Shown: piece after piece, positions 10,974 to 62,935 of the stretch | How the letters are laid out: each line of letters starts with the position of its first letter | Numbering within the stretch: position 1 is the stretch's first letter | Virus record (IMG/VR): IMGVR_UViG_3300010158_000027 | Location: 217,270-281,269 of that record | Length of the DNA stretch: 64,000 nt | Reading direction: 5' to 3' (one strand) | Made by a program: the position numbers and the translations under genes | Notes under the pieces: generated by a model | What the model saw: only the letters and a program-made list of their open reading frames with translations | Told to the model about the DNA's origin: nothing | The model's database searches: none

Positions 10974-11890
10974 ATCGGAAACGTCCGATAACGTTCTTTG
11001 AAATTCTAAAACCGACCGAAACAGTCACCACAGTTAAAAAAAGTGAATATAACACCTCCCTTTCTTTAAACGTGAAACTAAATTAAGTCATTGGGCCGTG
11101 TATGGTCCATTAAAATAAACCACGAAAGTGGGATAAAGTGAATTTGCGAGTGTTAGTAGATTTGCGTCTTGGGAAACTGAGGTCGAGTACACAAGTGGGA
11201 TATCATCCGACCTTTAGTATTGAGGGCGACGCTTTAGGGAAAGTGGTTGGATGGAACGGCAATGTGGATTGTCAGTCTGAGGAGGGAACTCCAATAAGAA
11301 TAACCCATAGGTATCAAGCGAAAAATATAAATTCCAAATATATAATTGCGGATACCATTATAAAAGGGGACTTAAAACCGAAAGGTAAGATAAAGAACGA
11401 GTGGTGTCGCTATTATCCCTATCAAAGATCTACCAAGATCTTGATATGAAGTAATCTTAAAATATGGAAATGGGGACATTTCACGAGGTAGTCAGGTATT
11501 CTGTTTTTCAAAAGAAAATGGATCCTAAACGGACCGCTACTTTGATTCATCCACAACACACAACTTATTACTAAATTAAGTAAAATTAACTAAAAATAAG
11601 CAAAAGTGTTCGTTACGATATGACGGAAGTTACCCACCTATTCACTGGCTGTCAGTGGAACGTGATAACCGCAAGTTTGACCGTATTTTTATGAAAAATC
11701 TCTAGGACGTCGAAATCCGAATCAGGACGCAATCTTGATGAGACAGGAGTAGTAAGAGAGTAGTTGTATCGTCAAGGAGTGATTGGTCTAACCAATCGGT
11801 AATGAGTGTTACAGGACAAAATCCTGTGGATAAGAGTAGAATACATAATGACTCAAAAGACACTTAATAAAAACTATAATCTCAGGTTTT
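10974..11890 (+). ncRNA. large (~900 nt) structured non-coding RNA, GOLLD/ROOL-like context
   Basis: GC-elevated region lacking a credible ORF, many hairpins (CCACGAAAGTGG, ACCGAAAGGT, TTCACTGGCTGTCAGTGGAA, GATTGGTCTAACCAATC, ACAGGACAAAATCCTGT), promoter-like sequence upstream, tRNA immediately downstream; boundaries approximate. Confidence 0.55.
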
Positions 11891-14690: not shown

Positions 14691-16020
14691 TGTCACTCCA
14701 CCGAAAAACCCAACCATCTTTAGTGGTTGGGATGTAAGGTGTGAAATAATTTAATATTTTTTTAATAAAATTCTTCTTTTTGTTAAAACCAAGATATTTA
14801 TATAATATGAAGGTTATTAACAAATCATACAAAGTTAGAATTTACCCTAATAAAGAACAAAAAGTTCTTTTGGAAAAACATTTTGGTTGTATTAGATTCG
14901 TATATAATCATTTTTTAAATGTTAGAAATCTGGAATATAAAGAGAATAAAATCAATCTGAATTATGTTGTAACGGCAAATAAACTATCAGAAATGAAAAA
15001 TTTAGAAAATTTTAACTTTCTTAATGAGGTTAATTCACAATCATTACAATGGAGTTTAAAATATTTAGATAACTCATTTAGAAACTTCTTCAGAGGACAA
15101 ACAAAATTCCCTAATTTTAAGAAAAAATCAAATAACCAATCATTTAAAGTACCGGTTAATTCTACATTTAAAATAGAAAAAAATAAAATTATTATCCCTA
15201 AATTTAGAGAAGGTATCCATTTTAGAGGTAAATTAGAATTAAAAAATTTAATTAAATTTAATTCAATTAATATATCCAAAACCGCATCAGGTAAATATTA
15301 TGCTTCATTACAAGGGGAATTTAATTATACACCTAAAGTTCAAAATGATAATAAAGTAGGTATTGACTTAGGTTTAAAAAAGTTTTTAATAACCGATACT
15401 GGTGTTAAATTTGACAATCCTAAATTCCTTAAAAAACAATTAAAAAAATTAAAATACAAACAAAAACAATTAAGTAAAAAAAATAAAGGTTCTAATAATA
15501 GACAAAAACAAAGAATTTTAGTATCTTTAATTCATGAAAAAATAAGTAATAAAAGAAATGATTTTTTACATAAGTTAAGTCAAAAAATAGTTAATGAAAA
15601 TCAAATTATCTGTTTAGAAAACTTATCTGTTAAAAATATGATAAAAAACCATAAATTAGCTCAATCAATATCAGATGTTAGTTGGTCAAAATTTGTTGAT
15701 ATGTTAAAATATAAATCGGATTGGAATGATAGACAATTAGTTCAGATAGATAGGTTCTATCCTAGTTCTAAAAGTTGTTCCGCTTGTCATTATATAAACG
15801 AAGGATTAACATTAAAAGATGGAGAATGGACTTGTCCTTCTTGTAATACACATCACGATAGAGATGTAAATGCTGCTAAAAATATCCTTATACAAGGAAT
15901 AAACATATTGTCTGGTTCGGGAACCGAGTCGGACATTAAACAAAAACCTGTGGAGGCGTTGCGGTTACGCAAGTCTAAGAAACAGGAATCCCATTCATCT
16001 TTAGTGATTGGGTAGTTCAA
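14691..16020 (+). mobile_element. IS200/IS605-family element (tnpB only, IS1341-like)
   Basis: Related subterminal hairpins CCCAACCATCTTTAGTGGTTGGG (14709-14731) and CCCATTCATCTTTAGTGATTGGG (from 15990), right end TTCAA; no tnpA; left boundary approximate. Confidence 0.75.
14807..16015 (+). CDS. tnpB: RNA-guided endonuclease TnpB
   Basis: N-terminal KVRIYPNKEQ...FGCIRFVYN; RuvC GIDLG / LENL / DRDVNAA; CSAC-CPSC Zn ribbon. Confidence 0.93.
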   Translation: MKVINKSYKVRIYPNKEQKVLLEKHFGCIRFVYNHFLNVRNLEYKENKINLNYVVTANKLSEMKNLENFNFLNEVNSQSLQWSLKYLDNSFRNFFRGQTKFPNFKKKSNNQSFKVPVNSTFKIEKNKIIIPKFREGIHFRGKLELKNLIKFNSINISKTASGKYYASLQGEFNYTPKVQNDNKVGIDLGLKKFLITDTGVKFDNPKFLKKQLKKLKYKQKQLSKKNKGSNNRQKQRILVSLIHEKISNKRNDFLHKLSQKIVNENQIICLENLSVKNMIKNHKLAQSISDVSWSKFVDMLKYKSDWNDRQLVQIDRFYPSSKSCSACHYINEGLTLKDGEWTCPSCNTHHDRDVNAAKNILIQGINILSGSGTESDIKQKPVEALRLRKSKKQESHSSLVIG

Positions 16021-20034: not shown

Positions 20035-20343
20035 CATCGGTTATTTGATCTAGCACTAGGATAATAACAGCCATTAGATGAAGCTAGCGTCGTGAATGGA
20101 GGTGTAAGCTAAGACAGACTTACAAAGTTGGGGTACCAATAGATACAAACCCCCAACACAAACAGATTGACACAAAGGCATGAACAGTGGTGTTGTCGTA
20201 AAGTGTTATAAGATTAATGATAGCTAAAAAATAAATCTTATAACTAGGCTCTCGGCAGTACGTTATACAATCTGAACAGGTGCTTCCTGTTTATTTTTTA
20301 CATAATACTTGACAATCTAAAAGTGATGGTTTAATATTATGTA

Positions 20344-20415
20344 AGTCAGTTAGCTCAGTTGGTAGAGCAATCCCCTTAAAAGGACGTGTCATTGGTTCGA
20401 ACCCTTTACTGGCTT
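20344..20415 (+). tRNA. degenerate tRNA (possible TAA anticodon), probably a pseudo-tRNA
   Basis: Acceptor AGTCAGT/ACTGGCT and D arm GCTCAGTTGGTAGAGC are good; anticodon and T stems mismatched. Confidence 0.45.
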
Positions 20416-20421
20416 ATTTTT

Positions 20422-33029: not shown

Positions 33030-33728
33030 ATGAAAACAATTAAGTTAACAATAATTTCTGATACGCATAATAAGCATAAACATCTAACAGGTGATTTACC
33101 TGGCGGATCATTATTGTTGCATTCTGGAGACATATCTTCTATGGGTTACGAACACGAGATTCGTGAGTTCGCAAAATGGTACGATGGTTTGAACTATGAT
33201 AACAAAATATTTATTGCGGGTAACCACGATTGGGGTTTCCAAAACAACGTTGAGAAAGTCAAAGGTATCTTAACAGGATACAAAACTATTGACTACATCC
33301 AAGATGAGTTAATGACTGTCCAAGACGGTGATGGTCCTGAGATTAAAATTTGGGGTTCTCCTTGGCAACCTGAGTTCTACAATTGGGCGTTTAACTTACC
33401 TAAAAACGGTGAAGAGTTGAAAGCAAAATGGGATATGATACCTGAAGGGATTGATATCTTAATTACTCACGGACCGGCTTGGGGAATATTGGATGATGTT
33501 GAAGGTAACCGCAATGTTCACTTGGGTTGTGAATTACTTGCGGAGCGAATCAAACAAATCAAACCTAAAATCCACATCTGTGGTCACATCCATAGTGGAC
33601 ACGGACACTACTTCGATGGACACACCCATTACTTCAATGCGTCTGTATTGAACGAGAGATATCTTTATTCTCATGAGCCATGGAATATTGATTGGAACCC
33701 AATTACTAATGAAATTAAATTTTTATAA
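33030..33728 (+). CDS. calcineurin-like metallophosphoesterase (MPPED-like)
   Basis: SDTH, HSGD, AGNHD, THGP, GHIH. Confidence 0.9.
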   Translation: MKTIKLTIISDTHNKHKHLTGDLPGGSLLLHSGDISSMGYEHEIREFAKWYDGLNYDNKIFIAGNHDWGFQNNVEKVKGILTGYKTIDYIQDELMTVQDGDGPEIKIWGSPWQPEFYNWAFNLPKNGEELKAKWDMIPEGIDILITHGPAWGILDDVEGNRNVHLGCELLAERIKQIKPKIHICGHIHSGHGHYFDGHTHYFNASVLNERYLYSHEPWNIDWNPITNEIKFL

Positions 33729-34889: not shown

Positions 34890-34951
34890 TAATTATAAAT
34901 ATCAATATAAATAGTTTGGTTTTGATAAATAAATCACATACATTTGTAATT

Positions 34952-35533
34952 ATGGATAAGAAACAAAATTTAGAGAATTTAATATTTGACATTTTTGATA
35001 AAGAAATTGATGGTGCTGACGTTTATCATAATAATGGTAGTGATTGGATAATTTTTACGGAGGAAAAAAAATGGGTTACTGAGTTTACCGAGACAAAAAC
35101 GTTATGGTATAACTACCAACACTTCAATGAGTTATTGGTGTATTTTGGTATGGATGTAAGTGAATCCACCGAGTATATTAAAAAGTGGTACGAAGAAAGA
35201 TTCATATTTAAACCGAAGGTTGAGAATACCATTCAAAATGGGGTGAAGCACACCAGCAAAGATATTAGTTTCAAACGATTTAGAGTTGATCATACCATTC
35301 AAAATGGGGTGAAGTACACCCATTTTAAAACATTTAAAGTTCCTAAATCTGTTGAAGATACCATTCAAAATGGGGTGAAGTCCACCTTCAAATCTTGGAA
35401 CAATAATATTACAAGCGTTGAAAATACCATTCAAAATGGGGTAAAAGATATCAGACGCACCCGACTAAATAATATTACAAGCGTTGAAAATACCATTCAA
35501 AATGGTGTGAAAGATACTATAAATATTATGTAG
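34952..35533 (+). CDS. protein whose C-terminal half is encoded by a CRISPR-like array
   Basis: N-domain (LWYNY...FGMD.SE..EYIKKWYEE) resembles the paralog-family domain; five V-x-x-TIQNGVK units. Confidence 0.75.
   Translation: MDKKQNLENLIFDIFDKEIDGADVYHNNGSDWIIFTEEKKWVTEFTETKTLWYNYQHFNELLVYFGMDVSESTEYIKKWYEERFIFKPKVENTIQNGVKHTSKDISFKRFRVDHTIQNGVKYTHFKTFKVPKSVEDTIQNGVKSTFKSWNNNITSVENTIQNGVKDIRRTRLNNITSVENTIQNGVKDTINIM
35219..35518 (-). CRISPR. CRISPR-like array: 5 x 36-nt repeats, 4 x 30-nt spacers, in frame within a CDS
   Basis: Repeats at 35219, 35285, 35351, 35417, 35483 (GTTGAGAATACCATTCAAAATGGGGTGAAGCACACC and variants), exact 66-nt period, internal CCATT-CAA-AATGG hairpin; strand inferred from likeness to VI-B repeats. 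Confidence 0.75.
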
Positions 35534-35538
35534 CGAAT

Positions 35539-35928
35539 ATGGAAAAGACACTAACGATATGCCGTGGAATTCCCGGAGCAGGAAAATCGACATTCGCCAA
35601 AACATTGGGTGGACAACACTACGAAGCTGATCAATATTTTATTGATGAAAAAGGTAACTACCAATTCGACATTACCAAAATTAAAGATGCCCACAAGTGG
35701 TGCCAAGGAATGGTTCAATCTGACATGGTATTGGAATGCCCGAAGATTGTCGTGTCAAACACCTTCACGCAAGAGTGGGAGATAAACCCTTATTTTGAAT
35801 TGGCAAAGGAGTATGGGTATAAAGTGTTTACTATCATTGTTGAGAATAGACATAATGGTAAAAACGCGCATGAAGTTCCAGAAGATAAAATACAAATGAT
35901 GAAAGATAGGTTCGAGGTTAACCTTTAA
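35539..35928 (+). CDS. P-loop kinase (AAA_33 / polynucleotide kinase-like)
   Basis: RGIPGAGKST, EADQYF, VSNTF. Confidence 0.85.
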   Translation: MEKTLTICRGIPGAGKSTFAKTLGGQHYEADQYFIDEKGNYQFDITKIKDAHKWCQGMVQSDMVLECPKIVVSNTFTQEWEINPYFELAKEYGYKVFTIIVENRHNGKNAHEVPEDKIQMMKDRFEVNL

Positions 35929-36511
35929 CTAAAAACTTTTTAAAATCAGTTGTTGATGGTTTTTTATTTTTAAAATAATATATTTCGGTTTTACCTTCAT
36001 ATGTGATTTTTTTATAATACGCATCTGGAACGGTAGCGCCTGAGGTCAAAACTTTAGACGTCTTACTGAACTCACATATTATCTCAACTAAAACTATTTT
36101 ATATTTTAAAGCCAGACTTCGTTCATACTCCTCCAATAATCTCCAAGTGGTTCGATTAAGATCTTGATGTTGTAGTGAACAATTTAAATAGGTAAACGTT
36201 TTTTTCAATATATCTATAGTACAATTAAAATCAGCAGCAGGAGCCATGTGACCCTTGTCCCAGATATTATCATCGTAGTCTTTATTGTCTGAAGTAATGA
36301 TTGAATCACAAATATAAAAATCGAGACCCTTTCTCGATGCTGTACCTGATGGACATTGAACGGAATACTTTACAGATATTGGTTGTTGTAATTTTTCCGA
36401 ATAGATAATTTTAAATATGTCACTTTTAATGACAACACTATCTCTTAAAACTTTTTGAGATAATAATAAAAGGGGAAAAATAAAAAATAAGGATAATAAA
36501 AACTTTTTCAT
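35918..36511 (-). CDS. secreted DNA/RNA non-specific endonuclease (NucA-like)
   Basis: Signal peptide MKKFLLSLFF...; DKGHMAPAAD...TFTYLN...Q...LN...W..LE. Confidence 0.85.
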   Translation of the reverse strand: MKKFLLSLFFIFPLLLLSQKVLRDSVVIKSDIFKIIYSEKLQQPISVKYSVQCPSGTASRKGLDFYICDSIITSDNKDYDDNIWDKGHMAPAADFNCTIDILKKTFTYLNCSLQHQDLNRTTWRLLEEYERSLALKYKIVLVEIICEFSKTSKVLTSGATVPDAYYKKITYEGKTEIYYFKNKKPSTTDFKKFLVKG

Positions 36512-36538
36512 TCTAATAAATATAACTACATTTGTATT

Positions 36539-37192
36539 ATGAGTTTTAAAAAAATACAAACAACAGGTAGGGTCTGGTTTACTTCAGATACCCATTTTTC
36601 GCACAAAAATATTTGTCGTGGGGTAACGGATTGGCGAACCAAAGATGGTGAAGTACCAATCGATGCGACTAGAGATTTTTTGACGGTTGAAAAAATGAAT
36701 GCAAGATTGGTGGATAACATTAACCATTTTGTTAATCAAAACGATACTCTAATTATGTTGGGTGACGTTTCATTTGGGGGGTTTGAAAACATTGAGATAT
36801 TTTTGGATAGACTAATATGTAAAAATATTCACCTAATACTGGGAAATCATGATCACCACATTGAAAACAATAGAGAGAATATACGAAGTAAATTTTTGAG
36901 TGTGTCTCACTATTTGGAGGTGAGTATAAACGACCGTAAATTTGTTTTGTGTCACTACCCACTCCAAAGTTGGCATGGGATGTCCAAAGGGGTTATCCAC
37001 CTTCATGGGCACATTCATTCAGGATGTAAAAATAAATTTGGTAATGGTAAAAAAATGGATGTCGGTGTAGATGGAAACGGGTTGGATCCGTATAGTATTG
37101 ATGAGATAATTAAAATTATGTCTAAACGTTCGATCGGTTCCGAGATATCAGATGATCACCATTTAGATGGGATGGTTGGGGTTGTGGGATAA
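36539..37192 (+). CDS. calcineurin-like metallophosphoesterase
   Basis: SDTHF.H, LGD, GNHD, CHYP, HGHIH, DVGVD. Confidence 0.9.
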   Translation: MSFKKIQTTGRVWFTSDTHFSHKNICRGVTDWRTKDGEVPIDATRDFLTVEKMNARLVDNINHFVNQNDTLIMLGDVSFGGFENIEIFLDRLICKNIHLILGNHDHHIENNRENIRSKFLSVSHYLEVSINDRKFVLCHYPLQSWHGMSKGVIHLHGHIHSGCKNKFGNGKKMDVGVDGNGLDPYSIDEIIKIMSKRSIGSEISDDHHLDGMVGVVG

Positions 37193-39408: not shown

Positions 39409-41718
39409 TTATCCTATTTTAATTAATGTTAATACTCTATTATATAATGTCCAATCATTAGTATTTGTGTTTGTTCTATAATATGGTGCAACTGCTGTTG
39501 AACCATTCGCAGTTAAAATCCATTGTGTAGCTACAGAACCACGTTGAGAATGATTACCAAAATTACTTACCCTAACAGTGGTTGCTGTTTGTATTGAAGC
39601 ACCATAAAATATAGCAACATCAATCCAATCATTAATGTTAGTTGATGTTTCAATATCGCTTGTAAAATTAACTAAATACGTTCCAGCAGCTGGGGTTATT
39701 GAGATATTAGGAAAAACTGTATATGATGTGTCTCCAACAGCAACAGAAGTTGTTGAAGAATCTATATAATTTGTTAATGATGAACTAGATGGAGATGACC
39801 AAGTTCCATTACCACTAGCATCTGAAGTTAATACATAACCAACAGTTCCACCTGATGATATTTGTATCGTACTTGTTACGGTTTTACCACTAACAACTAA
39901 TTTATCAGATGGTGAAGACACCCCAATACCAACATTACCTGTTGGACTAACTACAAAAGGTGATGCGTCTGGATTTGTTGAATCCTCAACAACCAATGCA
40001 TTGCCAGAACCAGTTTGTGTGATTCTAACAAGGTCAGAAGATGAATTACCACTAAACCATGATTGGGTCCCACCACTCACTATAATGTTACCATTTACTG
40101 TTAAACCTGTCATTGTATTAAACAATGTACTAAACGTACCACCAGTATTATTAGTATAAGTAAATGTATTATTTGAATATGTACTACCAGTTACACGTAT
40201 ATCTGTTGGTAAATTACTATAAGTTGTGGCTGATATTGTTGTAGCTGTTAATGCTTTTATTGATGTAGTACCAGTTACTGTTAAATTTCCATTTACTGTT
40301 AAACCACTTACAGTATTAAACAATGTACTAAACGTACCACCAGTATTATTAGTATAAGTAAATGTATTATTTGAATATGTACTACCAGTTACACGTACAT
40401 CTAAAGGTAAACCTTGATATGTCGTTGCTGATATTGTTGTAGCTGTTAATGCTTTTATTGATGTAGTACCAGTTACTGTTAAATTTCCATTTACTGTTAA
40501 GCCACTTACAGTATTAAATAATGTATTAAATGTACCCCCAGAATTATTGGTGTAAGTAAATGTATTATTTGAATAAGTACCACCAGTTATACGTACATCT
40601 AAAGGTAAACCTTGATATGTCGTTGCTGATATTGTTGGTACATATAATGTCCCAGACATAGTATCACCACTTTTATTTAATTTTGTAGTTAAATTAGATT
40701 GAATTATTTGTATAGTACTACAACCACTTAAATTTTCACAATTTAATGCACTACTACTACTAAATGGTGTTATACAATATGAATAATGGTTTGAACCTTC
40801 ACTAAATAATGTTATTGTTTTAGTTGAAAAACCAGTATTTGTTGCATTAACTTTAATTAATATTCTATCACTTGAATTGATAGAACAACCACTAAAATAA
40901 CCATCTGTTAATATCATTGTAACATTTGGTGACTCTAAAATGTTATCTGTAGGGTCTGTTGAAAAAAGATATGTTTCACTACCACCACTTGCTCTAATAT
41001 AAACATCACAATATAAATCAAAATTAGCACTTGAATCCTCTTTATATGTGTGTAAATAAAAACTCCAATACGCTGCCGGTATTAATGAAGTGTTTGGATA
41101 TCCGACAGGAGTTAAAAAAGATTCTATTGTTGAACTAGTTCCACTAGGTATAGATACAGTTGCGAATTGTTCACCACTATTTGATTCGATAGGACTGAAT
41201 TCTTTATACGGTGATTGTGTTTGTGATATGTTTAAATAATAAACTTGACCACCTGCACCACCAATTGGTAAACCATTAACGGTAAAATTATTATCAGCAT
41301 TATTTCTAAACGTTATTTCTCCATTGGTATACGTACCACCAGTAACAAAAACATCTAAAGGTAAATTTTGATAGGTTGTTGCCGATATTGTATTAACATT
41401 GATGGAATCTAAACTGGTTGTCCCTGTAACGGTTAAATTTCCATTTATGGTTAAACCTGTTAATGAATTTATCGACGCACTAAAGGTACTACCTGAGTTA
41501 TCGTATAAGGTAAATGTGTTTTCATTATATGTGAATCCTGTGATGGTAGCATTAGTACTGGCAGAAACGGAACTTAAAACGTAATTTTTTAAATCAGTTA
41601 TTTTAGTGTTTTTAGTGGTACCTTCAGCCACATCATAATTCACTAAAACAAGTAAATCGTTTAGTGTGTACCCCGAACTACCAACGTAGTCCAATTCTGA
41701 TATTAATCTATCTTCCAT
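39409..41718 (-). CDS. Thr/Gly/Ser-rich fibre-like structural protein
   Basis: 769 aa, internal 66-aa repeats, GNVGIG..SPS.KL motif. Confidence 0.7.
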   Translation of the reverse strand: MEDRLISELDYVGSSGYTLNDLLVLVNYDVAEGTTKNTKITDLKNYVLSSVSASTNATITGFTYNENTFTLYDNSGSTFSASINSLTGLTINGNLTVTGTTSLDSINVNTISATTYQNLPLDVFVTGGTYTNGEITFRNNADNNFTVNGLPIGGAGGQVYYLNISQTQSPYKEFSPIESNSGEQFATVSIPSGTSSTIESFLTPVGYPNTSLIPAAYWSFYLHTYKEDSSANFDLYCDVYIRASGGSETYLFSTDPTDNILESPNVTMILTDGYFSGCSINSSDRILIKVNATNTGFSTKTITLFSEGSNHYSYCITPFSSSSALNCENLSGCSTIQIIQSNLTTKLNKSGDTMSGTLYVPTISATTYQGLPLDVRITGGTYSNNTFTYTNNSGGTFNTLFNTVSGLTVNGNLTVTGTTSIKALTATTISATTYQGLPLDVRVTGSTYSNNTFTYTNNTGGTFSTLFNTVSGLTVNGNLTVTGTTSIKALTATTISATTYSNLPTDIRVTGSTYSNNTFTYTNNTGGTFSTLFNTMTGLTVNGNIIVSGGTQSWFSGNSSSDLVRITQTGSGNALVVEDSTNPDASPFVVSPTGNVGIGVSSPSDKLVVSGKTVTSTIQISSGGTVGYVLTSDASGNGTWSSPSSSSLTNYIDSSTTSVAVGDTSYTVFPNISITPAAGTYLVNFTSDIETSTNINDWIDVAIFYGASIQTATTVRVSNFGNHSQRGSVATQWILTANGSTAVAPYYRTNTNTNDWTLYNRVLTLIKIG
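40091..40637 (-). repeat. intragenic tandem repeat, 198-bp unit, ~2.8 copies
   Basis: CCATTTACTGTTAA at 40091, 40289, 40487. Confidence 0.85.
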
Positions 41719-59553: not shown

Positions 59554-60066
59554 ATGAAAGAACTGATTAGGAACATATTAAAAGAGGAATCATTAAAGCA
59601 AAGTCTTAGACAGCAAGTTAAAGATTATGGTTGGAAAGATACCGCAGAAATGGTTAATGGATCAGAAGAGTTGGCAAAATTGGCGTTCAATAATGATCCA
59701 ATGGAATTTTTACACATGTTTGATGATATGGATTTTGTTCAGTCAAAAATTGAAAAAGACTGGACATTATTTAGATTTGAAAAAGGGCATAATCTGATGA
59801 TTTACGATAGAAAAGATGAGTATGTTTACATAGATTATTCTGACATTTGGTCATTTTTGGAAGATGGTTTCGAACTTAACTACTCTGAGACGCAGGAACT
59901 TACAACAAGATGGTTGGAAGAAGTATACAAATTAAGGGGAGTCACAACACATAGATGGGGCAAGACTAATGAATTCTTGGTGGATGAAGCATACAAATTA
60001 AGGGGAGTCACAACTCCAAACAGGTTATTCTTATCTATAAACCGGTGGATGAAGCATACAATTTAA
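59554..60066 (+). CDS. array-bearing paralog family member 3
   Basis: Paralog; C-terminus read through repeats (YKLRGVTT twice). Confidence 0.85.
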   Translation: MKELIRNILKEESLKQSLRQQVKDYGWKDTAEMVNGSEELAKLAFNNDPMEFLHMFDDMDFVQSKIEKDWTLFRFEKGHNLMIYDRKDEYVYIDYSDIWSFLEDGFELNYSETQELTTRWLEEVYKLRGVTTHRWGKTNEFLVDEAYKLRGVTTPNRLFLSINRWMKHTI

Positions 60067-60067
60067 G
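59913..60067 (+). CRISPR. CRISPR-like mini-array: 2 full + 1 partial 36-nt repeats; 30- and 29-nt spacers
   Basis: GTTGGAAGAAGTATACAAATTAAGGGGAGTCACAAC (59913), GGTGGATGAAGCATACAAATTAAGGGGAGTCACAAC (59979), partial at 60044. Confidence 0.72.
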
Positions 60068-60073
60068 AAAGAA

Positions 60074-60718
60074 ATGAAACAGTTAATTAAACAAATATTA
60101 TTACAAGAGGTAAATAAGAAATACTCTAAACCAACACCAAGTGTGGAAAAACTAATCTATAATTGGTTGGATAACTATATTTCAGGAGCGCAGATGTATC
60201 ACGAAAAACACTATGAGTTTAATTATGGTTTTGAATGGTGTAATGATGGTATGGAAATAATGAGTTTTGATTTAGCGTTTGAATATATTGATGAATACCA
60301 TAGTAATAGAGTAAAAAATAGTGAAAGGAATTTTGATAGGGGAACTTTACAGATGCCTAAAGACATAATCCAAGAAATGCTTACGGACATTCCTGTAAGA
60401 AAAAACTATTTAATATATGTTATTGAGGAGTGGTTCGAGGACACACTATTAGATAAGGTTTCAACTATGATTGGAAGAGACGATATTTCAATTGATGAGT
60501 TTGAGGAATATCCAGAAACGGCACTAGTTTGCGTTCCACCACAAACAAAACCTGAAGGGTTAACTGATGATCAAATGATCGACTATATTGTTTCAAATAC
60601 TTTGCATAGAAAGGAACATTTAGAAAGGAGTATGTTGGAAGATCCTGATTTTGATTTAGAAAAATTGTATTTAGATATACTGAAGATGGGTGAGAGTAAA
60701 AGATTAAGAGGACAATAA
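60074..60718 (+). CDS. leader-bearing protein (MKQLIKQILLQE)
   Basis: Start lies within the decayed last repeat. Confidence 0.8.
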   Translation: MKQLIKQILLQEVNKKYSKPTPSVEKLIYNWLDNYISGAQMYHEKHYEFNYGFEWCNDGMEIMSFDLAFEYIDEYHSNRVKNSERNFDRGTLQMPKDIIQEMLTDIPVRKNYLIYVIEEWFEDTLLDKVSTMIGRDDISIDEFEEYPETALVCVPPQTKPEGLTDDQMIDYIVSNTLHRKEHLERSMLEDPDFDLEKLYLDILKMGESKRLRGQ

Positions 60719-60768
60719 CAGATTGGAAACGTCCACATTTTAATTTTATGGGATATTTATAATGATAT

Positions 60769-61293
60769 ATGAAACAGTTAATTAAACAAATACTAAAAGA
60801 GGAATCGTTAAAGCATAATCTTAAACAACAGATTAAGGATTATGGATGGAGAGATACCGCAGAAATGGTTAATGGATCAAAAGAGTTGGCAAAATTAGCA
60901 TTCGATAATGATCCGATGGAATTCCTACATATGTTTGATGATATGGATGTTGTTCAGAGCGAATCTGACATAAATTGGACTTTATTTAGATATGAAAAAA
61001 GAAATAATCTAATGGTTCACAATAAAAAAAATAAATATGTTTACATAGATTATTCTGACATTTGGTTATTTTTGAAAGAAGGTTTTGGACTTAAACACTC
61101 TGACATACAGGCATTTACAACGAGATGGGTGGATGAATCATACAATTTAAAGGGAGTCACAACTGACTCGTCGTTTAAAATCTTTATTATCGAGGTGGAT
61201 GAATCATACAATTTAAAGGGAGTCACAACCAAACGAGGGATAAGCAGGGACGCAATCATGGTGGATGAAGCATACAATTTAAGAAAGAAATGA
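60769..61293 (+). CDS. array-bearing paralog family member 4
   Basis: Paralog; VDESYNLKGVTT twice plus VDEAYNL. Confidence 0.85.
   Translation: MKQLIKQILKEESLKHNLKQQIKDYGWRDTAEMVNGSKELAKLAFDNDPMEFLHMFDDMDVVQSESDINWTLFRYEKRNNLMVHNKKNKYVYIDYSDIWLFLKEGFGLKHSDIQAFTTRWVDESYNLKGVTTDSSFKIFIIEVDESYNLKGVTTKRGISRDAIMVDEAYNLRKK
61128..61283 (+). CRISPR. CRISPR-like mini-array: 2 identical + 1 partial 36-nt repeats; two 30-nt spacers
   Basis: GGTGGATGAATCATACAATTTAAAGGGAGTCACAAC at 61128 and 61194; partial at 61260. Confidence 0.75.
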
Positions 61294-61763
61294 AACAGTT
61301 AATTAAACAAATATTAAAAGAGGAAACTGAAGATGATCGCGTTAGAGTATCCAAAGGTATCAATGCGTTGGTTAGTTTAGTGAAGAACACTTTTCCATTT
61401 ATTGTTGGTTGGGTTTGGGCCAAAGAGGATTGGGATGAGGGTATGTTTGGGATATATATACACTTAGTTATTGATCAAAAAAAAGTTAAAGAGATTTATG
61501 GTTTAAATTATAGATCATGGTATGATGGTAAACATAGTGTACTACAAAAGGCAATCAACGATAAATCGACATATGCGTACCCCATTAGTTTATTGGATTA
61601 CGAATCGGAAGGTATTGATGCTTATGAGGAAAATAGGGCAATTAAAGATTTAGTTAACGATACGTATGAGATTATACCTGATGAGTATAAAGTGGAAGTA
61701 AATAAACCATACTTTTATCAAGAAGCCAAAACTCTTGAAATTGACAGTTATATTTTTGTTTAA
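61290..61763 (+). CDS. leader-bearing protein (MKQLIKQILKEE)
   Basis: 157-aa ORF. Confidence 0.8.
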   Translation: MKQLIKQILKEETEDDRVRVSKGINALVSLVKNTFPFIVGWVWAKEDWDEGMFGIYIHLVIDQKKVKEIYGLNYRSWYDGKHSVLQKAINDKSTYAYPISLLDYESEGIDAYEENRAIKDLVNDTYEIIPDEYKVEVNKPYFYQEAKTLEIDSYIFV

Positions 61764-62935
61764 TGAAAAATCTGATACGACATATATTAAAGGAAGAAAC
61801 TAATAACGTTAAGTTAGTTAAGGATATTGTACTTGCTATGTTTGATAATGTTAAGTTTGTAGAATATGTTCCCGAAAGAAATGAGATTATGGTTTTTTAT
61901 ACTAATCGTGATAACCGACAAATGTTGATACCCACCGAAGTATGTGATAAGATTAGTCAATACACTGGTTTAGATGTAGTTCCTTGGCATATAGGTAGAG
62001 AATCCGATAATCAACCTGATTTTTATATAGATACTGAGGAGTATGAGGAACCCCCTAATGAAAAGAATCTAAGGGCTATTAAAACAATATTGCCCCAAGT
62101 TAGTTGGGATGGGCTTTGTGATATATGGGTGGAGTACTGTGAAGAAGATGACGATTACGAAATTAGATCTAAATCAATCAAAAGACATTATCTTTCAGAC
62201 GATACTGACATAATAGATGAGTTATTTTCTTTAAAAAACATTTTAAAATCTATGGGGTTAAAGGTGGGGGTTTTTGCTCCAATACCGGTTGATAGTTGCG
62301 AAGATGATGTGGAGTCTATTAATGAAGATAAAGAAACACCAAATGAAATAGAAAAGAATCTACGAGCCATTAGAACGGTATTGTCACAAGTTAGTTGGGA
62401 TGGTTTATGTGATATATGGGTAGAATATAGCAAGACGGATGGGGAATATGAAATTCGATCTAAATATGTGGGAGAATCGTTTACCATTGAGGATAGTAAA
62501 GATTTAGATTTTTTAGAAAACGCAATACGATCAATGGGTTTAAGTGTTTATATATACACGCCATGGTTTGTTGATAGTTGTGAAGATGATGTGAAGTTCA
62601 TTAACGAGTCTAAAGAAAACTCAACAAAAGAACTCATTTATAGGGTTTTAAATGACTTGGTATTACCACAATACGATCACGTTATTTGTGGGTTTGAATT
62701 ACATAATGTCGATGATAAATATTTAGACAATGATCTTAATTATCCAGGAGTTGATGTTACATTTATTGGTGGTAAAGGTACAAAACTATATCCACAAACA
62801 TCAGGCATTCAAAAAATGTATGATGATGTATTGGGTGAGATTTGGGACACAGTGTACGATTACACGGGTATTTCACTTGAACTATATTCAAAATACGTTA
62901 AAGATTGCGGAAAAGAAAACATCTACTTAAGGTAA
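61763..62935 (+). CDS. leader-bearing multidomain protein with internal duplication
   Basis: EKNLRAI...QVSWDGLCDIWVEY...YEIRSK...SMGL...VDSCEDDV present twice. Confidence 0.8.
   Translation: MKNLIRHILKEETNNVKLVKDIVLAMFDNVKFVEYVPERNEIMVFYTNRDNRQMLIPTEVCDKISQYTGLDVVPWHIGRESDNQPDFYIDTEEYEEPPNEKNLRAIKTILPQVSWDGLCDIWVEYCEEDDDYEIRSKSIKRHYLSDDTDIIDELFSLKNILKSMGLKVGVFAPIPVDSCEDDVESINEDKETPNEIEKNLRAIRTVLSQVSWDGLCDIWVEYSKTDGEYEIRSKYVGESFTIEDSKDLDFLENAIRSMGLSVYIYTPWFVDSCEDDVKFINESKENSTKELIYRVLNDLVLPQYDHVICGFELHNVDDKYLDNDLNYPGVDVTFIGGKGTKLYPQTSGIQKMYDDVLGEIWDTVYDYTGISLELYSKYVKDCGKENIYLR

Follow-up and report, generated by a model that had tools for sequence, protein, structure and literature searches.

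Organization of the locus

We studied a 64-kb window, i.e., the whole 64,000-nt stretch of DNA that was analysed, belonging to a 281-kb freshwater phage contig. A gene of 193 codons from its ATG carries in its C-terminal half five 36-nt repeats separated by four 30-nt spacers, all of them in frame. The repeats showed start-to-start spacings of 66, 66, 66 and 66 nt, and their translation reads V-x-x-TIQNGVK-x-x. The invariant 14-mer ACCATTCAAAATGG occurred five times in the window, always within this array, against 0.10 expected from shuffled sequences. Tandem Repeats Finder missed the array because whole 66-nt units are less than 70% alike. The array had been described in an earlier note made from the sequence alone, and its existence was confirmed here, with two corrections of detail: spacers 3 and 4 share their 3' 15 nt, and the reverse complement of the repeat, which the note gave as having GGTG...CAAC ends, starts with GGTG in only three of the five copies. 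The features of the locus are collected in Table 1.

Table 1 Features of the array gene and of its relatives in the window (numbering of the 64-kb window). L and P numbers designate homologous loci and proteins; L128 is a metagenomic CRISPR array (see below); rc, reverse complement.
Position	Strand	Feature	Observations
34915..34946	+	Bacteroidota-type promoter, -33 TTTG and -7 TACATTTG, separated by 20 nt	ATG follows 5 nt later, so the mRNA is leaderless or nearly so
34952..35533	+	Whole gene, 193 aa plus stop: N-domain and 5-unit cassette tail	More than 2000 homologous protein clusters; 449 clusters at 50% identity match the N-domain profile
34952..35218	+	Conserved N-terminal alpha/beta domain (aa 1-89), unannotated: helix, four strands, two helices	AlphaFold2 pLDDT about 90; invariant residues Y25 W32 I34 T36 W41 E44 L51 N54 F58 W79
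35219..35254	+	Repeat unit 1 (VENTIQNGVKHT); rc is CRISPR-repeat-like	rc matches the L128 repeat at 28/36
35255..35284	+	Cassette 1 (SKDISFKRFR)	24-mer found only here in IMG/VR
35285..35320	+	Repeat unit 2 (VDHTIQNGVKYT)	29/36 to the L128 repeat
35321..35350	+	Cassette 2 (HFKTFKVPKS)	24-mer found only here in IMG/VR
35351..35386	+	Repeat unit 3 (VEDTIQNGVKST)	30/36 to the L128 repeat, 25/36 to F. columnare CRISPR-2
35387..35416	+	Cassette 3 (FKSWNNNITS)	Shared, with one change, with homologue L002
35417..35452	+	Repeat unit 4 (VENTIQNGVKDI)	27/36 to the L128 repeat
35453..35482	+	Cassette 4 (RRTRLNNITS)	3' 15 nt identical to those of cassette 3
35483..35518	+	Repeat unit 5 (VENTIQNGVKDT)	26/36 to the L128 repeat
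35519..35533	+	Conserved C-terminal end (INIM) and stop	Same ending in close homologues P0002-P0005; next gene starts at 35539
59554..60066	+	Family-2 relative: probably homologous N-domain, two full units (59913-59948, 59979-60014) and a partial third (from 60044)	Units are also rc of the CRISPR repeat, read in another frame
60769..61293	+	Second family-2 paralogue, units 61128-61163 and 61194-61229 and a partial unit from 61260	

The host-type promoter proposed in the note was found. The pattern TTTG-N17-21-TAnnTTTG gave 12 hits in the window against 4.2 expected, one of them at this position, and the same arrangement was conserved upstream of eight homologous loci (L001-L005, L042, L043 and L045). 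Searches with the gene and its parts gave few leads. Rfam, run on the region and on the whole window, found nothing for the array, and a near-identity search against GenBank phages found nothing. Pfam and PHROGs gave only sub-threshold hits (LPD3 at E 0.001 and phrog_3212), the N-domain profile matched nothing among PDB sequences or in Pfam, Foldseek against PDB had no hit below E 0.9, and ESM Atlas gave no usable lead. A literature search for the motif IQNGVK found no papers. The family comprises over 2000 clusters at 90% identity, with arrays of 1 to about 36 units, and is wholly unannotated. It was found only in phages, no relative being detected in 185,579 species genomes.

The note had aligned the N-domain by eye with the protein encoded at 59554 and had named profile or structure comparison of the two as the way to test it. 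By sequence this alignment was only weakly supported (hhalign E 0.011-0.018), but both domains presented an identical predicted strand-strand-strand-strand-helix-helix core and the same top structural neighbours, suggesting that they are probably homologous. We refer to the array gene and its relatives as family 1 and to the two genes near 59.9 and 61.1 kb as family 2. The exhaustive profile search did not show whether the family-1 profile reaches family 2.

Similarity to Flavobacterium CRISPR repeats

Read antisense, the repeat is a relative of Flavobacterium-type 36-nt CRISPR repeats; the note had pointed to a resemblance to Cas13b repeats. The metagenomic array L128 has 23 repeats of sequence GTTGTAGTACACCCCATTTTGAAAGGTATCTACAAC and 29-30-nt spacers. 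The reverse complement of the phage consensus matched the L128 repeat at 30/36, the published F. columnare CRISPR-2 repeat at 25/36 and that of F. branchiophilum at 23/36 (each with shuffle p <= 2e-5), whereas unrelated control repeats scored 12-13/36 and the real repeats share 25-29/36 with each other. Note that L128 was retrieved with a pattern that fixed 21 of the 36 positions taken from the phage repeat, so that only 10 of the 15 free positions, plus the two published repeats, are independent evidence. Over the 3' part, ATTTTGAA.GGTATCT.CAAC, the agreement was 19/21. The reverse complement of the L128 repeat translates as VVDTFQNGVYYN, against VEDTIQNGVKxT in the phage.

The units of family 2 matched the reverse complement of these repeats at 23-25/36, and their frame-2 translation FKIRAVT resembles YKLRGVT. 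On their coding strands both arrays are the reverse complement of the CRISPR repeat, family 1 keeping repeat nt 10-36 and family 2 mainly nt 1-21, and they are translated in different frames. The two arrays are not, as the note had claimed, in opposite orientation.

Several other features of type VI-B arrays were absent or different. CRISPR repeat RNA of this type folds with a 5'-GUUG/CAAC-3' terminal stem and a U-rich loop (10.1101/092577). The real repeats folded closed at -7.7 to -12.2 kcal/mol, whereas the reverse complement of the window units left the 3' CAAC unpaired, folding was no better than that of shuffles, and no phage unit in IMG/VR had the 5' GTTG version. The largest ORF in the window is 769 aa, and a PADLOC scan of the nine largest ORFs plus the array gene hit only a TnpB at 14780-16015, 20 kb away; the rest of the 281-kb genome was not examined. 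No TTTG-N-TAnnTTTG motif was located on the minus strand downstream of the array, and the array has no leader. Spacer searches, which the note had named as a check, returned no protospacer: 171 spacers gave no match outside arrays in the window plus the homologous loci, 24 spacers gave none against GenBank phages, and four 24-mers hit only their own contig in IMG/VR. A full comparison of spacers with the virome was not made, and these searches leave it undecided whether the spacers match foreign nucleic acids. One L128 spacer matched locus L011 at 19/20, but out of register and at only 20/30 overall, so likely by chance.

The array evolves as protein-coding sequence

In 72 genes, 423 of 477 short spacers were 30 nt long, and the 302 distinct spacers fell into 251 unrelated families. 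Spacer lengths were only 21, 24, 27, 30, 33, 36 or 45 nt, i.e., multiples of 3. None of the 302 spacers had an in-frame stop (the chance of this for 251 independent ones is 3e-79), against 4.8-10.8% stop codons in the other five frames and against 13 of 22 L128 spacers with stops in the matching frame. Of 1198 core matches in 124 loci, 1189 lay in frame in ORFs. Repeat conservation was codon-periodic, low information falling on codon third positions. Related cassette variants differed at codon positions 36/39/78, with 57 synonymous and 46 non-synonymous changes, i.e., 55% synonymous against 22% expected (p 2e-13), and shared cassettes showed a dN/dS of about 0.2. No experiment shows that the protein is made: the public runs compared with the region were all assembled contigs that break inside the array, and the RNA library contained only a relative, unstranded, so they were uninformative. 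The tail was predicted to be disordered (pLDDT about 30).

The note had stated that identical spacer content in all relatives would count against its reading. Spacer content differs completely between relatives, and N-domains 99.6-100% identical in DNA carried arrays that differ in about half of their cassettes. The same cassette carried the same upstream x-T in 82% of pairs (13% in random pairs) and the same downstream VEDT variant in 78% (17% in random pairs), whereas the neighbouring cassette was the same in only about 36%. Polarised growth was not observed: repeats degenerate toward the C-terminal end (rho 0.28), but first units are often shared, and differences are internal and include order swaps. 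No GC gradient along the arrays, as a sign of fresh foreign inserts, was detected.

Besides protein-level selection, the repeat-derived part showed conservation at the nucleotide level. Synonymous-site identity between distant genes was 0.69-0.98 in codons V1, E2, T4, I5, Q6 and N7, against 0.56 in the N-domain, and the rare codons ACC, GGG and GTG were retained. Predicted duplexes of mRNA units with L128 repeat RNA had energies of -25 to -38 kcal/mol, against -10 +/- 3 for shuffles.

Proposed origin and possible role of the array

We consider it more likely than not that the array is a CRISPR array captured antisense and exapted as the modular, hypervariable tail of a translated early gene of a Bacteroidota phage. 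The selection of the tail as translated protein, the kinship with CRISPR repeats, the shuffling of modules and the extra nucleotide-level constraint are results of the analysis itself, whereas the capture and any role in the phage-host conflict are deduced from them. In this view, each 22-codon module consists of 12 codons that are the reverse complement of a Flavobacterium-type (type VI-B-like) repeat plus 10 codons of unrelated sequence (a cassette); because 36 + 30 = 66 = 22 codons, every unit keeps the frame, and a sister family reads the same antisense repeat in another frame. Cassettes are unrelated to one another and have random-like composition, yet each is kept by purifying selection as a peptide. 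Whole modules (K-x-T + 10 aa + V-E-D-T) are exchanged between phages by homologous recombination inside the invariant repeat-derived core ATTCAAAATGG, as a result of which near-identical phages carry different cassette sets. Since the repeat-derived 21-27 nt keep more synonymous-site conservation than coding requires, a nucleic-acid-level role persists, either the core serving as the recombination handle or the mRNA acting as a multi-copy anti-repeat able to pair with host crRNA repeats. The likely role, inferred and not shown, would be counter-defence; function was not tested. The origin of new cassettes is unexplained, as they match nothing else and their GC content (38%) is far above that of the L128 spacers (about 23%). 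As no phage unit keeps the repeat's 5' GTTG, capture, if it happened, is old, and no intermediate was found. These two observations, on GTTG and on GC content, also led us to reject ongoing import from canonical host arrays. No conserved partner gene hints at the function.

The interpretation of the earlier note was partly supported. Its suggestion of a Cas13b-like repeat read antisense held, as did its argument that the recurrence of the 36/30 architecture behind a probably homologous N-domain reflects function rather than chance. Its proposal that any crRNA would be antisense to the mRNA found no support, as nothing indicates antisense crRNA production.

If our reading holds, this is the first case of a CRISPR array exapted into protein-coding sequence, which has not been described before, and a new way for viruses to build hypervariable proteins, with 66-nt modules that keep the frame and recombine at a repeat-derived core. 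The size of this phage-only family makes it a sizeable blind spot in virome annotation. CRISPR finders will call these genes as viral CRISPR arrays, so they are also a systematic source of false phage-borne arrays.

Alternative explanations

A possible but less likely explanation, which can coexist with the former, is an RNA-level anti-CRISPR. The abundant early mRNA would carry 5 to about 36 copies of a 27-nt anti-repeat pairing with the repeat part of host type VI-B pre-crRNA or crRNA, blocking processing or loading or giving anti-tag-type silencing, while translation would only keep the long RNA from Rho termination and decay and keep downstream genes expressed. In consistency with this, the part of each unit that matches the CRISPR repeat (nt 1-27) is the part with excess synonymous conservation, and the predicted duplexes with real repeat RNA are at -25 to -38 kcal/mol, against -10 for shuffles. 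Two gene families read the same antisense repeat in different frames, so the DNA/RNA unit, not the peptide, is what they share. The gene has a strong early-type promoter and is first in its operon, and neighbours in both syntenic contexts are RNA-end-healing genes, as expected in phages facing RNase-type defences. However, an RNA sponge does not need the amino-acid-level purifying selection seen in cassettes, and the 9 nt next to the cassette, where anti-tag pairing would matter most, are the least conserved. The hosts, and whether they have Cas13b, were not identified, and no bacterial genome or array with the exact unit was found. crRNA already bound in Cas13b would be shielded. The conserved anti-repeat nevertheless makes a concrete, testable anti-Cas13b hypothesis; we are aware of no inhibitor of type VI-B systems. 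A doubtful further possibility is that phages of Flavobacteriia have domesticated a host type VI-B array as an open-ended, recombining library of peptide cassettes whose transcript still works as a multi-copy anti-repeat RNA that disarms Cas13b crRNAs, a dual RNA/protein counter-defence whose diversity mechanism would be inherited from CRISPR architecture.

It is unlikely that this is an ordinary tandem-repeat protein whose resemblance to CRISPR repeats and 36/30 spacing are coincidental. All coding signatures are present, 22-residue repeats are common, and the CRISPR repeats concerned are AT-rich and partly palindromic, which inflates matches in both orientations; the family-1 plus strand still matched F. 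branchiophilum at 20/36. On the other hand, the matches to the three real repeats were ungapped, in register and of equal length, and a second gene family behind a related domain matched the same repeat family. Cassettes are mutually unrelated, with random-translation composition (r 0.86-0.88), unlike diverged protein repeats, and synonymous sites are conserved exactly where the repeat matches.

A multi-core peptide precursor, with the N-domain as leader, the constant 12-mers as recognition or cleavage sites and the cassettes released as a library of roughly 10-mer peptides, is very unlikely. Constant flanks around hypervariable cores of variable number, each under purifying selection, recall the cyanobactin precursors PatE/TruE, of which hypervariable cassettes in a conserved background are the hallmark (PMC4663559). 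Cyanobactin precursors have 1-4 cores and their genes always sit in clusters with two proteases and tailoring enzymes, whereas here unit number is far larger, the gene is viral, no neighbour was conserved across the two syntenic groups and none was a protease, cyclase or other maturation enzyme. The leader would be an unusually large folded domain, and cassettes showed no preferred residues at any position.

A working phage-borne array, transcribed from the minus strand into crRNAs used by host Cas13b, for instance against competing phages, has in its favour the 36-nt repeats of Flavobacterium type VI-B kind, the unique 30-nt spacers and the existence of phage-borne arrays without cas genes, but is largely refuted by the coding signatures, the lack of the terminal stem, of leader-end polarity, of a cas gene in the window and of a promoter motif pointing into the array, and the start of the next gene 6 nt after the stop.

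Two other candidates were rejected. A tblastn search with the tail hit tape-measure proteins of Bacillus and Streptococcus phages (E down to 3e-7), which carry an 11-residue T[IV]WN[GA]IKS repeat; we treat this as likeness of motif and periodicity, not kinship, because it rests on the particular cassettes of this window. A diversity-generating retroelement was ruled out because cassette third positions are not restricted to C/T.

Comparison with known systems

The closest systems are the type VI-B arrays of Flavobacteriia, e.g., F. columnare CRISPR-2 and F. branchiophilum CRISPR-5/6/7, which share the 36-nt repeat and 30-nt spacers, the related repeat sequence, unique and mutually unrelated spacers, and differences between close strains by whole units. 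The phage array differs from them in lying antisense inside a translated ORF, in the loss of the repeat's 5' 9 nt, in spacers under amino-acid-level selection and in being found only in phages.

Phage-borne mini-arrays, solitary repeat units and RNA anti-CRISPRs, with whose sequences no comparison was run, are also phage DNA that copies host CRISPR repeats in an early or anti-defence-type position. They are non-coding, sense-oriented repeat mimics that bind Cas proteins or guide them; here the repeat copy is antisense to the transcript set by the promoter and ORF, is translated, and cannot fold like the repeat.

The gp38 adhesin of T-even phages (PMC3157838) likewise has a constant N-terminal domain followed by conserved short, glycine-rich motifs alternating with hypervariable segments in a modular design. 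However, gp38 has a fixed number of four segments in a folded receptor-binding domain at the tail-fibre tip, whereas here 1 to about 36 units form a predicted-disordered tail, the constant motif derives from a CRISPR repeat, no Pfam or PHROG match pointed to sequence kinship with gp38, and the gene lies in an early-gene context, its neighbours being a kinase, phosphoesterases, a nuclease and a lysozyme, not tail-fibre genes.

The iterons of the lambda origin inside the O gene are also repeated nucleotide-level elements, with dyad symmetry, embedded in frame behind an N-terminal domain. They number four and have no hypervariable spacers, while the present family has up to about 36 units, several paralogues per genome and cassettes selected as peptides.

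The repeat array and the gene that contains it

The sequence is AT-rich phage DNA (31% GC) and forms part of IMG/VR contig IMGVR_UViG_3300010158_000027 (281,269 bp), obtained from freshwater. The array consists of five 36-nt units at an exact 66-nt period, separated by four 30-nt spacers. The invariant core ACCATTCAAAATGG occurred five times in the window, all of them within the array, against 0.1 expected. The units lie in frame in an ORF of 193 aa, giving V-x-x-TIQNGVK-x-x followed by 10 variable residues. A Bacteroidota-type promoter (TTTG, then 20 nt, then TACATTTG) ends 5 nt before the ATG and is conserved in relatives. The array that the earlier note had described is thus confirmed.

Features in the phage window and in related loci (positions are window coordinates unless a locus is named)
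Location	Strand	Feature	Remarks
34952-35533	+	Array gene, 193 aa	
35219-35518	+	Five 36-nt units and four 30-nt spacers	
59554-62935	+	Run of five consecutive genes all starting with MK(Q/E/N)LI(K/R)xIL..E	Paralogous N-terminal module shared by otherwise different proteins
60044-60100 and 61260-61316		57-nt stretch, 100% identical in the two places	Spans the last partial repeat and the start of the next gene
33030-33728, 35539-35928, 36539-37192; L013:5580-5987; L011:1143-1874 (L011 and L013, fetched loci)		RNA-end-healing type genes around the array gene in both syntenic contexts	One group: two metallophosphoesterases and an AAA_33 (polynucleotide-kinase-like) kinase; the other: a cREC_REC cyclic-phosphate-processing domain and a PolyA_pol-head nucleotidyltransferase
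35918-36559	-	DNA/RNA non-specific endonuclease gene	Endonuclease_NS, E 2e-20
14780-16015	+	TnpB / IS605 OrfB-type protein, 411 aa	OrfB_IS605, Cas12f1-like TNB, HTH_OrfB_IS605; PADLOC Cas12f models at 4e-55
11484-11888	+	Full-length GOLLD RNA	Rfam RF02032, 277 bits; gathering score 150
20343-20416	+	tRNA gene, anticodon not named by ARAGORN ('tRNA-???')	Rfam tRNA, 41 bits
40091-40637	-	198-nt tandem repeat, 2.8 copies, 91% matches	Inside the 769-aa ORF 39409-41718
L062:3317-3976 and L063, same place (fetched loci)		Array gene with a nonsense codon inside a cassette	KRSYDG-stop-RKQRTK
L128 (Ga0075167_10984189), whole 1536 nt		Genuine CRISPR array with the repeat closest to the phage unit	First three repeats on the GTTG-strand 5' side degenerate

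The protein had over 2000 homologous clusters in metagenomes, and 449 clusters at 50% identity matched the profile of its N-terminal domain (N-domain); 124 viral loci were fetched. No relative was found in 185,579 bacterial and archaeal species genomes, and searches of Pfam, PHROGs, PDB and the literature returned no record of the family. All the members have a conserved N-domain of about 90 aa, predicted by AlphaFold2 with a pLDDT of about 90 and with the order helix, four strands, two helices. The N-domain is followed by 1 to about 36 units of 12 constant plus 10 hypervariable residues, predicted to be disordered.

The array is translated sequence under protein-level selection

Of 1198 core matches at the DNA level, 1189 lay in frame in ORFs. 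The 302 distinct 30-nt spacers contained no in-frame stop, whereas the other five frames carried 4.8-10.8% stop codons; the chance of 251 independent spacers all being open is 3e-79. Spacer lengths were only 21, 24, 27, 30, 33, 36 or 45 nt, and in the repeat logo low information fell on codon third positions. Related variants of the same spacer-encoded segment (cassette) differed at codon positions 36/39/78, with 57 synonymous and 46 non-synonymous changes, i.e., 55% synonymous against 22% expected (p 2e-13). One cassette (ELHKGVRPLA) differed between two loci by five synonymous and no replacement changes. In the array gene interrupted by a nonsense codon (L062 and L063), two more in-frame units and the normal ending follow the stop, so this is a recent truncation.

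The cassettes nevertheless look like CRISPR spacers. They were mutually unrelated, with 251 families among 302 spacers and k-mer sharing near chance. Their amino-acid composition followed random translation of their base composition (r 0.86-0.88; S, L and R on top), and no position had a preferred residue. Among 328 proteins, 1098 regular units held 686 different cassettes.

Exchange of modules between arrays

Identical spacer content in all relatives had been named beforehand as a result that would count against the earlier note's reading, and it was not what we found: phages whose N-domain DNA is 99.6-100% identical, with flanks 95-99% identical, carry arrays that differ in about half of their cassettes. 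The differences included internal gains and losses, a duplication and order swaps. A cassette travels with its flanking variable repeat residues: the upstream x-T was identical in 82% of pairs (13% for random pairs) and the downstream VEDT variant in 78% (17% random), whereas the neighbouring cassette was the same in only about 36%. The exchange unit is therefore K-x-T + cassette + V-E-D-T, and crossovers fall in the invariant core (IQNG; ATTCAAAATGG). Neither leader-end polarity nor a GC gradient was observed; repeats only degenerate toward the C-terminus.

Relationship to Flavobacterium CRISPR repeats

Cas13b repeats are described as 36 nt long, with a U-rich loop and GUUG/CAAC ends (10.1101/092577). 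A scan of JGI metagenomes with the pattern GTTG-N12-TTTTGAA-N-GGTATC-NN-CAAC found one contig, L128, which is a genuine array: 23 repeats, periods of 65-66 nt, AT-rich spacers of 29-30 nt, and stops in 13 of 22 spacers in the matching frame. Its repeat is GTTGTAGTACACCCCATTTTGAAAGGTATCTACAAC. The contig is present in wastewater metatranscriptome runs, so it is transcribed there. The reverse complement of the phage consensus matched the L128 repeat at 30/36, and at 25/27 over phage nt 1-27; of the 15 positions not fixed by the search pattern, 10 matched, including seven in a row. Independently, two published repeats matched: F. columnare ATCC 49512 CRISPR-2 (GTTGGGAAAGCCCTTATTTTGAAGGGTATCTACAAC, 30-bp spacers) at 25/36 and F. 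branchiophilum CRISPR-5/6/7 at 23/36 (PMC5395568). All three had shuffle p <= 2e-5, the real repeats share 25-29/36 among themselves, and a type II-C repeat and another control scored 12-13/36. The reverse complement of the L128 repeat translates in frame 1 as VVDTFQNGVYYN, close to the phage motif VEDTIQNGVKxT.

Part of this likeness is constrained at the nucleotide level. Between distant genes, identical residues of the N-domain shared the third base in 56% of cases, but the repeat codons that match the CRISPR repeat shared it far more often: V1 92%, E2 86%, T4 69%, I5 90%, Q6 98% and N7 94%. Codons beyond nt 27 were at or near the level expected from codon usage. The rare codons ACC, GGG and GTG (19, 16 and 14% genomic usage) were kept in 67, 68 and 53% of units.

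Several results show why this is not a working CRISPR array. The window presented no Cas-sized ORF and, in a PADLOC scan of its nine largest ORFs plus the array gene, no cas hit apart from the TnpB gene 20 kb away, a solo RNA-guided-nuclease-type gene in the phage with no array next to it; the rest of the 281-kb genome was not examined. No promoter motif faced the array from downstream, where the next gene starts 6 nt after the stop. No protospacers were found in the limited tests that were made, which leaves that point undecided. Real repeats fold into the closed hairpin, but the reverse complement of the phage units leaves the CAAC end unpaired, and no unit in IMG/VR kept the 5' GTTG form.

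A second gene family with the same design

The genes starting at 59554 and 60769 belong to a second family of 148 clusters with the same design, i.e., an N-domain followed by VDEAYNLRGVTT plus 10 variable residues, repeated 1-3 times. Comparison of the two N-domains by profile or structure had been proposed in advance as a test of their relationship, since absence of homology would have spoken against the earlier note. BLASTP found no N-domain homology with the first family (E 0.2-2.7). Profile-profile alignment was weak but collinear and ended exactly at the array junction (E 0.018 and 0.011), AlphaFold2 predicted the same four-strand, two-helix core before the disordered repeats, and both models had the same uncultured-phage proteins as best BFVD neighbours. 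We consider homology probable, not proven. The units of the second family matched the reverse complement of the Flavobacterium repeats at 23-25/36 on their coding strand, and their peptide YKLRGVT corresponds to the frame-2 translation FKIRAVT of the reversed F. branchiophilum repeat. Both arrays therefore have the same orientation, antisense to the CRISPR repeat, and not opposite orientations as the earlier note had claimed, and they are read in different frames. What the two families share behind the domain is the DNA unit, not the peptide. The last partial repeat, which is contained in the identical 57-nt stretch, is read in homologues either in frame (...VDEAYNLRKK-stop) or shifted (...RWMKHTI-stop), so it is conserved as DNA regardless of frame.

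Interpretation and genomic context

The analysis demonstrates that the array is translated, selected as protein, modular and recombining, that its constant part is a sequence relative of Flavobacterium type VI-B-like repeats, and that part of this likeness is still under nucleotide-level constraint. By inference only, a CRISPR array was captured antisense behind the N-domain gene and exapted, helped by 66 nt being 22 codons, and the core would now serve as the recombination handle. The analysis does not explain where new cassettes come from, nor what the cassettes or the N-domain bind. It is also possible that the mRNA acts as an anti-repeat: predicted duplexes with L128 repeat RNA were -25 to -38 kcal/mol, against -10 +/- 3 for shuffles, although this role was not tested. 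The interpretation offered in the earlier note thus finds partial support. The object is neither an active CRISPR array nor an ordinary repeat protein, and we know of no described equivalent.

The RNA-end-healing type genes found next to the array gene in both syntenic contexts (AAA_33 kinase and metallophosphoesterases; cREC and a CCA-type nucleotidyltransferase) fit phages that face RNase-type defences, but this evidence is only circumstantial. The nearby endonuclease gene is present or absent within the population: contigs of three runs join 35909 to 36536 with 12 other nucleotides between, and several syntenic relatives lack the gene.
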